Source of the DNA: Macrostomum lignano
Taxonomy: Eukaryota
Reading direction: 5' to 3'
Length of the DNA: 64,000 nt
NCBI GenBank assembly: GCA_002269645.1
Contig: NIVC01000103.1
Location: 803,393-867,392, forward strand
Shown here: piece by piece, positions 47,873 through 64,000 of the stretch
Numbering within the stretch: the first letter of the stretch is position 1
How the letters are laid out: each line of letters opens with the position of its first letter
Position numbers and translations under genes: made by a program
Notes under the pieces: generated by a model
What the model saw: the letters and a program-made list of their open reading frames with translations, nothing else
Told to the model about the DNA's origin: nothing
The model's database searches: none

Positions 47873-50800
47873 CTACTGCCGCTGTTGAACAGGCGGCAAG
47901 TCGTTGATCTCCGAGATCTCCTCCATGAATTTGGAAATTTCCATCATATCCAAATCAGGCAGGTCCAGGTCGTCTGAGGGAATGAGAAAAAAGCGTAGAA
48001 AAAAACTATAAATTCATTTTTGTTTATACTACTTATAACTGCTGTTGAATTAGTAGTATAAACCATAGCAAAAATGTGCAGATTTTTGCAAAAAAATAAT
48101 GAAAATAAATACCCGGGATTGGCGACTCTTCCTCCCGCTCAGGATGCTGCGGCGGAAGCTGAGACACCGCACCGAATGCACCGTCAAGTAGGCCGCTGCT
48201 GCACTGCGGACAGGCAAGCCGATTAAAGAAGACATCGGCCGCCAGCTCGTTGTTGCCGCTGGTGTCGGCGAAACGAAGCTCGCACTGGATTCGTTCGGCC
48301 TCGGCCAGCGCCACGGCTGGCGGCAACTGCAGCTGCAGCTCCAGCAGATTCTTCGGGCGGGCAGCCGAGGGTTTATGAAGAGCTGGGAGGCTGTGTGTGG
48401 CTCAGCAACTGAGGATCTGGGAGGCCGTGTGTGGCCCAGCAACTGAGGATCTGGGAGACTGTGGCCCAACAACTGAGGAGCTGGGAGGCTGGCCCAGCAA
48501 CTGAGGATCTGGGAGGCTGGCCCAACAACTGAGGAGCTGGGAGGCTGGCCCAGTAAGTGGGATCTGGGAGGCTGGCTCAGCAACTGAGGAGCTGGTAGGC
48601 TGTGGCCCAGTAACTGAGGATCTGGGAGGCTGGCTCAGCAACTGAGGATCTGGGAGACTGTGGCCCAGCAACTGAGGATCTGGGAGGCTGGCCCAACAAC
48701 TGAGGAGCTGGGAGGCTGGCCCAGCAAGTGGGATATGGGAGGCTGGCTCAGCAACTGAGGAGCTGGTAGGCTGGCCCAACAACTGAGGAGCTGGGAGGCT
48801 GGCTGAGCAACTGAGGATCTGGGAAGCTGGCCCAGCAACTGAGGATCTGGGAGGCTGGCCCAACAACTGAGGATCTGGGAGGCTGTGGCCCAGCAACTGA
48901 GGATCTGGGAGGCTGTGGCCCAGCAACTGAGGATCTGGGAGGCTGGCTCAGCAAGTGAGGATCTGGGAGGCTGGTGGCCCAGTAACTGAGGATCTGGAAG
49001 GCTGGCTCAGCAACTGAGGATCTGGGAGACTGTGGCCCAGCAACTGAGGATCTGGGAGGCTGGCCCAACAACTGAGGAGCTGGGAGGCTGGCCCAACAAC
49101 TGAGGAGCTGGGAGGCTGGCCCAGCAAGTGGGATCTGGGAGGCTGGCTCAGCAAGTGGGATCTGGGAGGCTGGCCCAGCAACTGAGGAGCTGGGAGGCTG
49201 GCTCAGCAACTGAGGATCTGGGAGGCTGGCTCAGCAACTGAGGATCTGGGAGGCTGGCCCAACAACTGAGGATCTGGGAGGCTGGCCCAACAACTGAGAA
49301 TCTGGGAGGCTGGCTGAGCAACTGAGGATCTGGGAAGCTGGCCCAACAACTGAGGATCTGGGAGGCTGGCCTAACAACTGAGGATCTGGGAGGCTGGCCC
49401 AACAACTGAGGATCTGGGAGGCTGGCCCAACAACTGAGGATCTGGGATGCTGGCTCAGCAACTGAGGATCTGGGAGGCTGGCCCAGCAACTGAGGATCTG
49501 GGAGGCTGGCTGAGCAACTGAGGATCTGGGAAGCTGGCCCAGCAACTGAGGATCTGGGAGGCTGGCCCAACAACTGAGGATCTGGGAGGCTGGCTCAGCA
49601 AGTGAGGATCTGGGAGGCTGGTGGCCCAGCAACTGAGGATCTGGGAGGCTGGTGGCCCAACAACTGAGAATCTGGGAGGCTGTGGCCCAGCAACTGAGGA
49701 TCTGGGAGGCTGGCTGAGCAACTGAGGATCTGGGAGGCTGTGGCCCAGCAACTGAGGATCTGGGAGGCTGGCTGAGCAACTGAGGATCTGGGAGGCTGGC
49801 TCAGCAACTGAGGATCTGGGAGGCTGGCCCAGCAACTGAGGATCTGGGAGGCTGGCCTAGCAACTGGGGGTCTGGGAGGCTGGCCCAGCAACTGAGGATC
49901 TGGGAGGCTGGCCCAGCAACTGAGGATCTGGGAGGCTGGCCCAGCAACTGAGGATCTGAGAGGCTGTGGCCCAGCAACTAAGGAGCTGGGAAGGGTGGCT
50001 CAGCAATGGAGGATTCGGTTTTAAAGGCTCAGATGACGCAGAGCAGCAGGAGAAGCACACAGAGAACAAGGGACTTACAGCCCTGACAGCTTTGTGCTGA
50101 ACATCAGCAATTGGCTCCTCCTGATGCGGGCTTGCCAGCCACATGTTATAATTGCCAGAACCTGGAAATTGTTACATTTGCAGAGTTGATTTTTTACGAT
50201 TTCAAAAATATAACAACAATGCTCGATAAGCCTACTGTAAGTAGACAGACAGCACATAAATTACTTACGCGCCAAGCCTTCAATATGCAGCCAAGCTTTT
50301 TGCTGAGTTGGCACCATCGGCAGACAGTCGGGCATCATTAGCGACTTCGGTGTAATTCGCACCGCCCTGTGCTGTCCTGAGTAGTATAGATAGCAAATTC
50401 GTTTAAAACTGTGTCGGAATTACAATAAAACGGCTAAGTTAAAAAACATTCAGCGCAACCCACTGTAGATGGCTTCAGTAACGATTCGAATGCAGTTGCC
50501 AGTTGGCTCGTGTGGAACACGAAGGCCAGGTGCACGCTCTCCAGCAATGATATATGGCGCGTGTACACGTCGTGAGCAGTTTGGGTGAATTCTGCCGATA
50601 TGTATCGAAAGTATAAATTGTAGAGCAATAATTACTACAATATAGGAAAGAAAGTTGCTGCAATTTGAGGGACTCACGGTGGAGAAACGGCACCTCGCCA
50701 GTTTGCAGGCGGTTGGCGATGGCCTGGCGCAGGGCCTCGTGATTTCGTTTGACGCAGAAAATTGCGATGTCGCTCAGCCTGCGCGATAAAAAATGGATTA

Positions 50801-61610: not shown

Positions 61611-64000
61611 TCATACTATTTGCAAAAACTCGTCCATGTTCACCACTGGTTTCTGGCTGGGAGTGGCTCTTTTGCGTTTCTGCGGAGCTTCTAAAAGGAT
61701 AAAGTTGACCGGTTTAATCAAGCAGATCCCGACAATAGTGTGTAAAATTAACTTCCCCTTGAAGCCTGCAACCACAAACCTATGACCGTCTCAACGTCAT
61801 GAATGACCCTACTCAGATGATCACAAACCGATGACCCAATTGAATCAACCCAAACTATGACCAAAACCCATGATTCCAAAGTTATGAACCAAAACCCGTG
61901 ACCTTAGTTATACAATATAAGGACCTGAAATCAAAGCAATGAACCCAAACCAATGACCTCAAAGCCATGACCTCAAACCAATGACCGCAAAGCCATGACC
62001 TCAAAGCCATGAACCCAAACCAATGACCCCAAGGCCATGAACCCAAACCAATGACCCCAAGGCCATGAACCCAAACCAATGACCCCAAGGCCATGAACCC
62101 AAACCAATGACCCCAAGGCCATGAACCCAAACCAATGACCCCAAGGCCATGAACCCAAACCAATGACCCCAAGGCCATGACCCCAAATCAATGACCCCAA
62201 GGCCATGAACCCAAACCAATGACCTTAAGACTACAAAATCGCAAGCCCCAACATGAACTGCCGAGTACTAACCAGTCAAAAACAGATGCATAGGGTCATT
62301 GTCCTGCTGAGAATAGAACAGTATAACATCCCTATGATCCGTGATGCTATTCCGAGTGTCCGTGATCACCAAATCGCATTTGTTTCGCTCGTTAAGATTC
62401 GTCAAGTAGTTGGAAGCGTCGGGTTTTGAAATCACCAACAGATGCTGCAGAAAAAAGTTCAGAATACGAGAACGCTTCGAAAATTTCCACCTGATGTATG
62501 TGATAAAATTAGCAAAATATTTTTACCTTCTTGGCCACTTTAACAGTGCATGGGCAGCTGCCATGAGGTCCAGCCTGAAGTTCAGCTTTAAAAGACGAAA
62601 TATCTGCATCTGAAAATTATAGTCTGGTTTGATGTACTAGACAGTCTATAGTTCTTGAGGGCAAGCATTTAAACTCAAGAGGAGGCATTGGGTGGCGTGA
62701 CAGGTTTGTCACAGGCGTCAGAAAAGGTTGTCAGGAGACTGGGGTGTCAGGAGAGACTGAGTTGTCAGGAGAGACTGGGTTGTCAAGAGAGACTGGGTTG
62801 TCAGGAGAGACTGGAGTGTCAGGAGAGACTGGGTTGTCAAGAGAGACTGGGTTGTCAAGAGAGACTGGGTTGTCAAGAGAGACTGGGTTGTCAGGAGAGA
62901 CTGGGGTGTCAGGAGGGACTGGGGTGTCAGTGTCAGGAGGGAATGGGTTGTAAAGAGAGACTGGGGTGTCAGGAGAGACTGGGTTGTCAAGAGAGACTGG
63001 GTTGTCAAGAGAGACTGGAGTGTCAGGAGAGACTGGGTTGTCAGGAGAGACTGGGGTGTCAGGAGGGACTGGGGTGTCAGTGTCAGGAGGGAATGGGTTG
63101 TAAAGAGAGACTGGGGTGTCAGGAGAGACTGGGTTGTCAAGAGAGACTGGGTTGTCAAGAGAGACTGGAGTGTCAGGAGAGACTGGGTTGTCAAGAGAGA
63201 CTGGGTTGTCAAGAGAGACTGGAGTGTCAGGAGAGACTGGGTTGTCAGGAGAGACTGGGGTGTCAGGAGGGACTGGGGTGTCAGTGTCAGGAGGGAATGG
63301 GTTGTCAAGAGAGACTGGGGTGTCAGGAGGGACTGGGGTGTCAGGAGGGACTGGGCTGTCAAGAGAGACTGGGGTGTCAGGAGAGACTGGGGTGTTAGAA
63401 GAGACAGTGAGGTGCCGAGAGAGACAGTGAGGTGTCAGGAGGATGTCAGGTGCTACAATAGGGTGTCAGGAAGATGTCAGGTGCTACAATAGGGTGTCAT
63501 GAGGATGTCAGGTGCTACAATAGGGTGTCAGGAGGATGTCAGATGCTACAATAGGGTGTCAGGAGGATATCAGATGCTACAATAGGGTGTCAGGAGGATA
63601 TCAGATGCTACAATAGGGTGTCAGGAGGATATCAGATGCTACAATAGGGTGTCAGGAGGATGTCAGATGCTACAATAGGGTGTCAGGAGGATATCGGATG
63701 CTACAATAGGGTGTCAAAGAAGCACGACAGGATCTTACGCGGCAGCGGATCGTCAAAGTACACCCAAATATCGTGGCAGCCACTGACTGTGGCTTGGTTT
63801 GGATGAATATCAAAAATGCCAAGTTTAACTTGCTGTCCTAAAATGTTTGTTGAAAATAAAAACAAAAACGATGCATGCAATTCATAAAGCACTAATTGTT
63901 TTACAATCTCAGAACAGAAACGATATTAAGAACTCACTAGAATCGGTGATGACATCAGAGGTCACAATGGCATTGGTAGGCTGGTGCTGGTCATTATAAT
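61611..64000 (-). CDS. Rel-homology-domain gene 1, 3' part (end of RHD, IPT-like, KRKR NLS); 5' end lies outside the window
   Basis: Exons >64000-63938, 63837-63739, 62609-62527, 62444-62273 and 61765-61611 join in the same phases as gene 2. Motifs [38 protein letters not shown] and PQKRKR. Confidence 0.8.
61940..62225. repeat. 28-bp repeat (ATGAACCCAAACCAATGACCCCAAGGCC)
   Basis: Direct observation; intronic. Confidence 0.93.
62720..63400. repeat. 18-bp repeat (GTCAGGAGAGACTGGGTT) with higher-order blocks
   Basis: Direct observation; intronic. Confidence 0.94.
63430..63715. repeat. 31-bp repeat (GTCAGATGCTACAATAGGGTGTCAGGAGGAT)
   Basis: Direct observation; intronic. Confidence 0.92.

Follow-up and report, generated by a model that had tools for sequence, protein, structure and literature searches.

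The window analyzed here is a 64,000-nucleotide (nt) stretch of the Macrostomum lignano genome (contig NIVC01000103.1 of assembly Mlig_3_7, GenBank GCA_002269645.1, forward-strand positions 803,393 to 867,392), and its positions 47873-64000 hold three Rel-homology genes that lie head to tail, all on the minus strand. We refer to them, in the order of transcription, as gene 1, gene 2, and gene 3. A sequence-only reading of this stretch, which was given no species name, had proposed a tandem array of Rel-homology genes with conserved intron phases, and had added that such an array would be of particular interest if the host were a flatworm; M. lignano is a free-living one.

The models of the three genes were assembled by hand from three-frame translations, GT-AG splice sites, and the reading frame. 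Open segments of the minus strand carry recognizable Rel-homology motifs ('EQP...RFRY', 'HPY', 'CV...NPF', 'RLAFQ', and 'GG.D.W.YF'), and the models reproduce the structure that the sequence-only reading had described, with all of its figures. Each gene has seven exons joined by GT-AG introns, with intron phases 2,1,1,1,0,1 (for gene 1, after completion from the public contig). Exon 4 measures 99, 99, and 108 nt and exon 5 measures 83, 86, and 83 nt in genes 1, 2, and 3, respectively, and the product of gene 2 has 358 amino acids (aa).

The visible part of gene 1 occupies 61611..64000 on the minus strand and comprises the end of exon 3 (63938-64000, with the frame read from 63998), exon 4 (63739-63837), exon 5 (62527-62609), exon 6 (62273-62444), and exon 7 (61611-61690, including the stop codon). 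Exons 4-7 measure 99, 83, 172, and 80 nt, and their phases agree with those of genes 2 and 3. The window ends before exons 1 and 2 and the beginning of exon 3, which fall at window-equivalent positions 64001-66051; adding this 5' part from the public contig (locus L002, 3926-6039) yields an intact gene of 334 aa with seven exons and the same phases.

Gene 2, annotated as BOX15_Mlig028098g1, spans 53913..60039 on the minus strand, with exons at 59651-60039, 59110-59207, 54971-55117, 54788-54886, 54617-54702, 54147-54330, and 53913-54046. These measure 389 (329 when counted from Met21), 98, 147, 99, 86, 184, and 134 nt, and all of their splice sites are GT-AG. The likely start is the second methionine, Met21, at window position 59979, and the 358-aa product read from there is identical to a methionine followed by the GenBank protein BOX15_Mlig028098g1.

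Gene 3, annotated as BOX15_Mlig027515g1, spans 47873..52184, likewise on the minus strand, and its stop codon ends at 47873. Its exons lie at 51814-52184, 50678-50778, 50460/50464-50591, 50269-50376, 50079-50161, 48113-48350, and 47873-47973, with sizes of 371, 101, 132, 108, 83, 238, and 101 nt. The third exon has two alternative ends: 50464-50591 uses a strong donor (GTGGGT), and 50460-50591 uses a weak, frame-keeping donor (GTTGCG), the only one with which the phase after exon 3 is preserved. The true start of the protein is probably the methionine of MTAQCQ, the 13th codon of exon 1, because the homeolog of this gene, on contig NIVC01000085.1, lacks the upstream ATG through a 1-nt difference of its own close to the start of exon 1.

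The frame problem at exon 3 of gene 3, which the weak donor would circumvent, was traced by comparison with the homeolog to a 1-nt deletion. The window copy of exon 3 has one base fewer than the homeolog (blastn, 170 of 172 positions identical, one gap), at about 50545..50556 on the minus strand, where GTGTTCCA-CACGAG faces GTGTTCCACCACGAG in the homeolog; around the gap itself, TTCCA-CACGAG in the window aligns with TTCCACCACGAG. Together with the strong GTGGGT donor, the deletion shifts the frame, so that the GenBank model of gene 3 ends at 206 aa. Because the assembly is PacBio-based and the site is a CC/C run, the deletion is probably a sequencing or assembly error, or else a very young mutation.

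The suspicion that automated annotation could miss these genes holds for gene 1 only, which is not among the called genes of NIVC01000103.1; gene 3 is called but cut short by what is probably a 1-nt assembly error, and the present models correct the local annotation on both points. The family as a whole did not escape annotation, however. GenBank already lists genes 2 and 3 as hypothetical proteins, the gene 1 homeolog (BOX15_Mlig029207g1) is annotated, and many relatives bear the UniProt name 'RHD domain-containing protein,' after the Rel-homology domain (RHD).

Extent, origin, and conservation of the array

The window contains the 3' end of the array, and genes 1, 2, and 3 are its last three members. 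Flanking members beyond the window were located through annotated proteins on the same contig, which revealed at least seven RHD genes on one strand over approximately 53 kilobases (kb) of NIVC01000103.1; the array thus has at least seven members rather than three. Along the direction of transcription, it consists of genes encoding 342, 387 (BOX15_Mlig000125g1), 340 (Mlig000125g2), and 354 aa, followed by gene 1, gene 2, and gene 3. The two upstream members that were mapped (340 and 387 aa) have seven exons each, with sizes similar to those of genes 1-3. A hidden Markov model (HMM) of the family, run against all six frames of the 64-kb window, matched every modeled exon in colinear order and found no further match elsewhere in the window.

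Related copies occur in other parts of the genome. A homeologous array on NIVC01000278.1 contains genes of 388, 341, 278, and 274 aa, gene 3 has the homeolog on NIVC01000085.1 mentioned above, and more M. lignano RHD paralogs lie on still other contigs. The homeologous arrays are consistent with the neopolyploid genome of M. lignano. The seven-exon structure and the intron phases are common to each gene, and the array therefore derives from a single seven-exon ancestor by repeated tandem duplication.

Protein identity within the array is as low as had been claimed, amounting to 41% between genes 1 and 2 and to 22% between gene 3 and either of the others (a range of 22-41%), and the family paralogs are mutually 19-57% identical. 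It follows that the duplications either are old or gave way to past bursts of change. This supports part of the earlier description of an old, rapidly diversifying expansion; rapid change at present does not agree with the comparison of homeologs. With the missing base restored, gene 3 and its homeolog differ by 15 synonymous and 0 non-synonymous changes over 363 codons, with a proportion of synonymous differences (pS) of 0.059. Gene 1 and its homeolog on NIVC01000278.1 have a ratio of non-synonymous to synonymous proportions (pN/pS) of 0.19. At the gene 3 locus, exons are 98.4% identical between the two copies, and introns and flanks approximately 90-96%. Because pN/pS ranges from 0 to 0.19 and exons are better conserved than introns, the array proteins are, as judged from sequence divergence, under purifying selection, which is strong for gene 3.

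Transcription is documented for a related gene. A Logan contig of 1124 nt, assembled from SRR30276804, has no introns and encodes a complete relative of 327 aa that is 57% identical to gene 1. When this contig is compared with the genomic loci by blastn, its matches split where the exon 1/2 and exon 4 boundaries lie, and it therefore represents a spliced mRNA. The BOX15_Mlig models in GenBank are, we presume, themselves transcriptome-derived.

Family placement, predicted fold, and functional residues

The Pfam profile RHD_DNA_bind (PF00554, cutoff 27) matched gene 1 at 64.7 bits and gene 2 at 55.3 bits (E=1e-14), as well as seven further paralogs at 41.5-89 bits. Gene 3 and its homeolog reached 24.0 and 24.4 bits (E=3-4e-5), under the cutoff, and are tied to the family through the family profile and the fold. 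Chance does not account for scores of this order in the three genes. When gene 2 alone was compared with PDB sequences by phmmer, only p65 and c-Rel passed E<1, with a best E of 6e-8. A profile built from 10 family members scored RelB at 83 bits, c-Rel at 79, p65 at 77, and Gambif1 (Dorsal) at 67, compared with 52 for p50 and 42 for p52. A word-indexed homology search returned no match when exon 1 of gene 2 was the sole query, and only queries made from the aligned three genes led to the family.

Searched exhaustively with HMMER, a set of 1.84 billion representative proteins yielded 333 matches, and all of those above 100 bits came from M. lignano. The nearest outgroups were insect Dorsal proteins at approximately 80 bits, with further Dorsal proteins and p65 ranking after them; among the named non-Macrostomum matches that were examined, none was a flatworm protein. 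The proteins end 40-60 residues past the RHD, Pfam detected no Ank or Death domain in them, and the sequences contain no glycine-rich stretch.

For the proteins of gene 2 and of the gene 3 homeolog, as deposited in GenBank, we generated AlphaFold2 models and compared them with known structures using Foldseek. Each model consists of two beta-sandwich domains. Both matched RelA over approximately 300 columns, gene 2 with E=1e-13 and the gene 3 homeolog with E=2.4e-11, and alignments of similar length were obtained for both with two-domain c-Rel, RelB, p50, and p52. Matches to NFAT structures were weaker (1e-8 to 1e-5, compared with 1e-13 for RelA). In these models, the domain predicted to follow the DNA-binding RHD is a second, Ig-like one of seven beta strands, with a pLDDT (predicted local distance difference test) of approximately 62-82. 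The outcome that the sequence-only reading had named as refuting it, a failure to match the RHD and IPT folds, did not come about: RHD_DNA_bind was recovered by profile and the two-domain RelA architecture by Foldseek, with the caveat that the RHD_dimer profile of Pfam found no match. A match between exon 5 of gene 3, read in another frame, and a motif of the RelA dimerization domain was dropped as a chance resemblance. Taking profiles and predicted folds together, the genes are best assigned to the Rel/Dorsal subfamily (class II) of RHD factors.

The DNA-contact residues of the recognition loop are largely retained. The recognition loop, whose residues contact DNA in the published RelA and p50 structures, reads RFRYETE in gene 1, RFRYESE in gene 2, and RFRFVTE in gene 3. 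All three genes thereby keep the base-contact residues R33, R35, and E39 of RelA; genes 1 and 2 also have Y36, where gene 3 has Phe, and the position of R187 is occupied by Arg, Lys, and His in genes 1, 2, and 3. The dimer-interface position F213 is a Trp in nine of the 10 aligned family members. The KRKR of genes 1 and 2 aligns exactly with the nuclear localization signal of RelA (K301-R304), and KRKR recurs at this position in most array members, with KRLR or KRSR in others; gene 3 has no KRKR and reads HPER there. Short acidic/hydrophobic C-terminal tails can be read from the sequence of all the proteins, and we take them to resemble the p65 TA1 motif.

These features allow the array to be compared with well-known RHD proteins. 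With RelA/p65, c-Rel, RelB, and the Dorsal/Dif/Gambif1 group, it shares a Rel-homology region that is two-domain in the predicted fold, the RFRY-x-x-E loop, the HPH and 'RL-F-Q' motifs, the KRKR at RelA positions 301-304, an acidic C-terminal tail, and the lack of ankyrin repeats, and this subfamily also provides the best sequence and fold matches. The differences are nonetheless considerable. Identity to RelA in the Foldseek alignments is 16-19%, the proteins have 330-390 aa as opposed to 550-970 in the Rel subfamily, Cys38 is changed to Ser or Thr, the linker is two residues shorter, F213 is changed to Trp, the dimerization domain is invisible to Pfam, and the genes exist in at least seven tandem copies in addition to other loci. 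With p50/p105, p52/p100, and Relish, the array shares the RHD fold and a short mature form, which in those proteins results from processing; it differs from these class I proteins in having no ankyrin repeats, glycine-rich region, or death domain and in their lower scores of 42-52 bits.

Interpretation and biological role

We consider it likely that the locus is part of an M. lignano array of at least seven compact (approximately 330-390 aa) RHD transcription factors of the Rel/Dorsal branch that arose by repeated tandem duplication. Proteins of this kind would bind kB-like DNA sites as homodimers or as heterodimers among paralogs, could enter the nucleus through the KRKR signal, and may activate transcription through their acidic tail, as p65 or Dorsal do, rather than act like p50-type processed precursors. 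Gene 3, the most diverged copy, in which KRKR is lost and Phe stands for Y36, may act or be regulated differently.

Several observations weigh against this assignment. Gene 3 lies below the Pfam cutoff, and its window copy is frameshifted. The redox-sensitive Cys38 of RelA is replaced by Thr, Ser, and Thr in genes 1, 2, and 3, and conservation does not extend to the K122/K123 backbone contacts. The Pfam profile RHD_dimer (PF16179) found no match at E<=0.01 in the 10 family members, and the similarity of the second domain to Rel dimerization domains is weak in hhalign (P=0.005, probability 7%), with a colinear alignment. Confidence in the structural models is moderate, with a mean pLDDT of 62 for gene 2 and 55 for the gene 3 homeolog. 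Given that RHD_dimer is unseen by Pfam and that hhalign is weak, the assignment of an IPT/dimerization domain rests on fold prediction.

Three other explanations of what these genes are can be weighed against the same evidence. The sequence-only reading had described short, p50-like proteins without an ankyrin tail, and the shortness and the absence of ankyrin repeats are borne out. If they were class I proteins comparable to the processed N-termini of p50 or Relish, they would be DNA-binding subunits without activation domains, and such an identity would suit proteins with little beyond the RHD, for which the structures of p50 and p52 are also strong Foldseek matches. However, the family profile gives 52 bits for p50 and 42 for p52 against 77-83 for p65, c-Rel, and RelB, gene 2 alone reaches only p65 and c-Rel at E<1, the closest non-Macrostomum proteins are Dorsal and p65, a glycine-rich region is absent, and the acidic/hydrophobic C-termini resemble an activation motif. 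We therefore regard a class I identity as improbable, and "Rel/Dorsal-like" fits the proteins better than "p50-like." Even less credible is that the array consists of duplicates in decay, either pseudogenes or genes about to be lost, whose low mutual identity reflects relaxed constraint. The 1-nt deletion that frameshifts the window copy of gene 3 and leaves a 206-aa GenBank model, the loss of KRKR and the sub-cutoff Pfam score of the same gene, and the presence of a transposon and minisatellites inside introns might suggest pseudogenes. Yet the frames are open through all seven exons in gene 1, gene 2, and the gene 3 homeolog, canonical splice sites are retained, and the excess of synonymous over non-synonymous differences (15 to 0 in gene 3, pN/pS 0.19 in gene 1) and the higher identity of exons (98.4%) than of introns (approximately 90-96%) indicate constraint. 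An affinity to the NFAT/TonEBP branch of RHD proteins, raised by the 'HHRFRYESE...GSR' of gene 2, which superficially recalls the NFAT sequence HHRAHYETEGSRG, and by the NFAT structures among the Foldseek matches, is the most remote of these explanations. NFAT chains were not significant against the 10-member family profile (12-16 bits, E>=0.045; Rel proteins reach 77-83 bits), their Foldseek E-values are five orders of magnitude weaker, and exon 2 of gene 3 shares 42% identity with residues 113-141 of RelA; the non-significant profile scores effectively ruled this affinity out.

A Rel/Dorsal-type array has to be set against the literature on flatworms, which agrees with the statement that NF-kB is commonly described as absent from them. 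NF-kB was scored "N.D." by BLASTp in seven flatworm species and called lost (PMC4484250), and a survey from 2024 found no p50/p105 proteins in Platyhelminthes (PMC11432056). Nevertheless, seven highly divergent RHD factors were described in Schmidtea mediterranea in Development in 2026 (PMC13563047), which means that flatworms as a phylum did retain the RHD. Like the array, the Schmidtea genes come from a flatworm and have long branches and low similarity to canonical NF-kB (PMC13563047); Schmidtea, however, belongs to a different flatworm order, and the present evidence for a tandem arrangement and for Rel/Dorsal affinity concerns Macrostomum alone. In the literature library that was searched, no publication links Macrostomum with RHD or NF-kB genes, and eLife 2016 e16793, Front Cell Infect Microbiol 2021, and BMC Biol 2026 yielded no statement on flatworm NF-kB.

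What role such factors would play is a separate matter. They may be RHD proteins that work outside an NF-kB role, as lineage-specific developmental or tissue regulators or as dominant-negative modulators, with no immune signaling and no cytoplasmic retention, an alternative that departs from the Rel/Dorsal array proposed above in biological role only and keeps the same molecular mechanism. Upstream parts of the NF-kB pathway have been reported missing in flatworms (PMC4484250, PMC4894443). In Schmidtea, knock-down of the divergent RHD gene that is the best class I NF-kB homolog had no effect on the tested TBK1-dependent response, whereas silencing the most Relish-like one proved lethal (PMC13563047). 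The loss of Cys38 points in the same direction, whereas the KRKR at the RelA position suggests that regulated nuclear import was kept; on balance, we see a role of this kind as possible but somewhat doubtful. More speculatively, and in our view unlikely, Macrostomum, and perhaps early-branching flatworms in general, may have kept Rel/NF-kB signaling and radiated a family of its own. At least 10 compact Rel/Dorsal-type factors would then form a combinatorial dimer network that serves as the missing transcriptional output of flatworm innate immunity or of the wound response, possibly with non-canonical regulators replacing IkB/IKK.

The significance of the Rel/Dorsal-type array lies in the presence of a large, constrained, tandem family of this kind in a phylum that was long scored as having no NF-kB. 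Its members are candidates for the transcription factors on which immune and wound signaling in flatworms converges downstream, and they are directly testable, M. lignano being a regeneration model that is open to RNA interference and transgenesis. The novelty is bounded by the familiarity of the molecular class and by the prior presence of the proteins in GenBank and UniProt.

Other elements in the window

Intron 2 of gene 2 contains an apparently complete DNA transposon of the P-element/THAP9-like type at 55294..58866 on the minus strand, with 32-nt terminal inverted repeats that are 97% complementary and CAGGCA on both flanks. Its transposase is distributed over two adjacent open reading frames (ORFs), 56630-58588 and 55756-56592 on the minus strand, and includes the Pfam domains THAP, Tnp_P_element, TNP-like RNaseH N/GBD/C, and THAP9_C. 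The two ORFs are in different frames, so that either a short intron or a frameshift must separate them. A 28-nt minisatellite of approximately 57 copies (48398..50014, 88% matches) takes up intron 5 of gene 3, and repeats of this family also fill intron 1 of gene 1, just past the window end (L002 4265-5650). Gene callers that work from ORFs could be led astray by the long spurious ORFs of this minisatellite.

Three paralogs encoding proteins with N-terminal ankyrin repeats and a C-terminal Ser/Thr kinase follow immediately downstream of gene 3, on the minus strand at 35053-46860. An 824-aa ankyrin ORF and a kinase exon on the plus strand, at 13726-19000, belong to the same ankyrin-kinase paralog cluster. 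A functional link between these kinases and the RHD array, of an IKK/RIPK-like kind, was considered and dropped: the kinase is nearest to the STE-group TNIK, MEK1, WNK, and MST3 and not to IKK or RIPK.

At 23617-24111 on the minus strand, the window also carries a universal stress protein gene (Pfam Usp) that is intact and has a single exon; in the public collection, its ORF is encoded at one place, on NIVC01000103.1. Tandem repeats make up approximately one-fifth of the window, with many micro- and minisatellites. Exceptionally dense minisatellite arrays occur at 6700-7700, 9000-10450, 24200-26200, 30440-32200, 40350-41960, and 45400-46140, and they yield long artefactual ORFs in several frames and on both strands.

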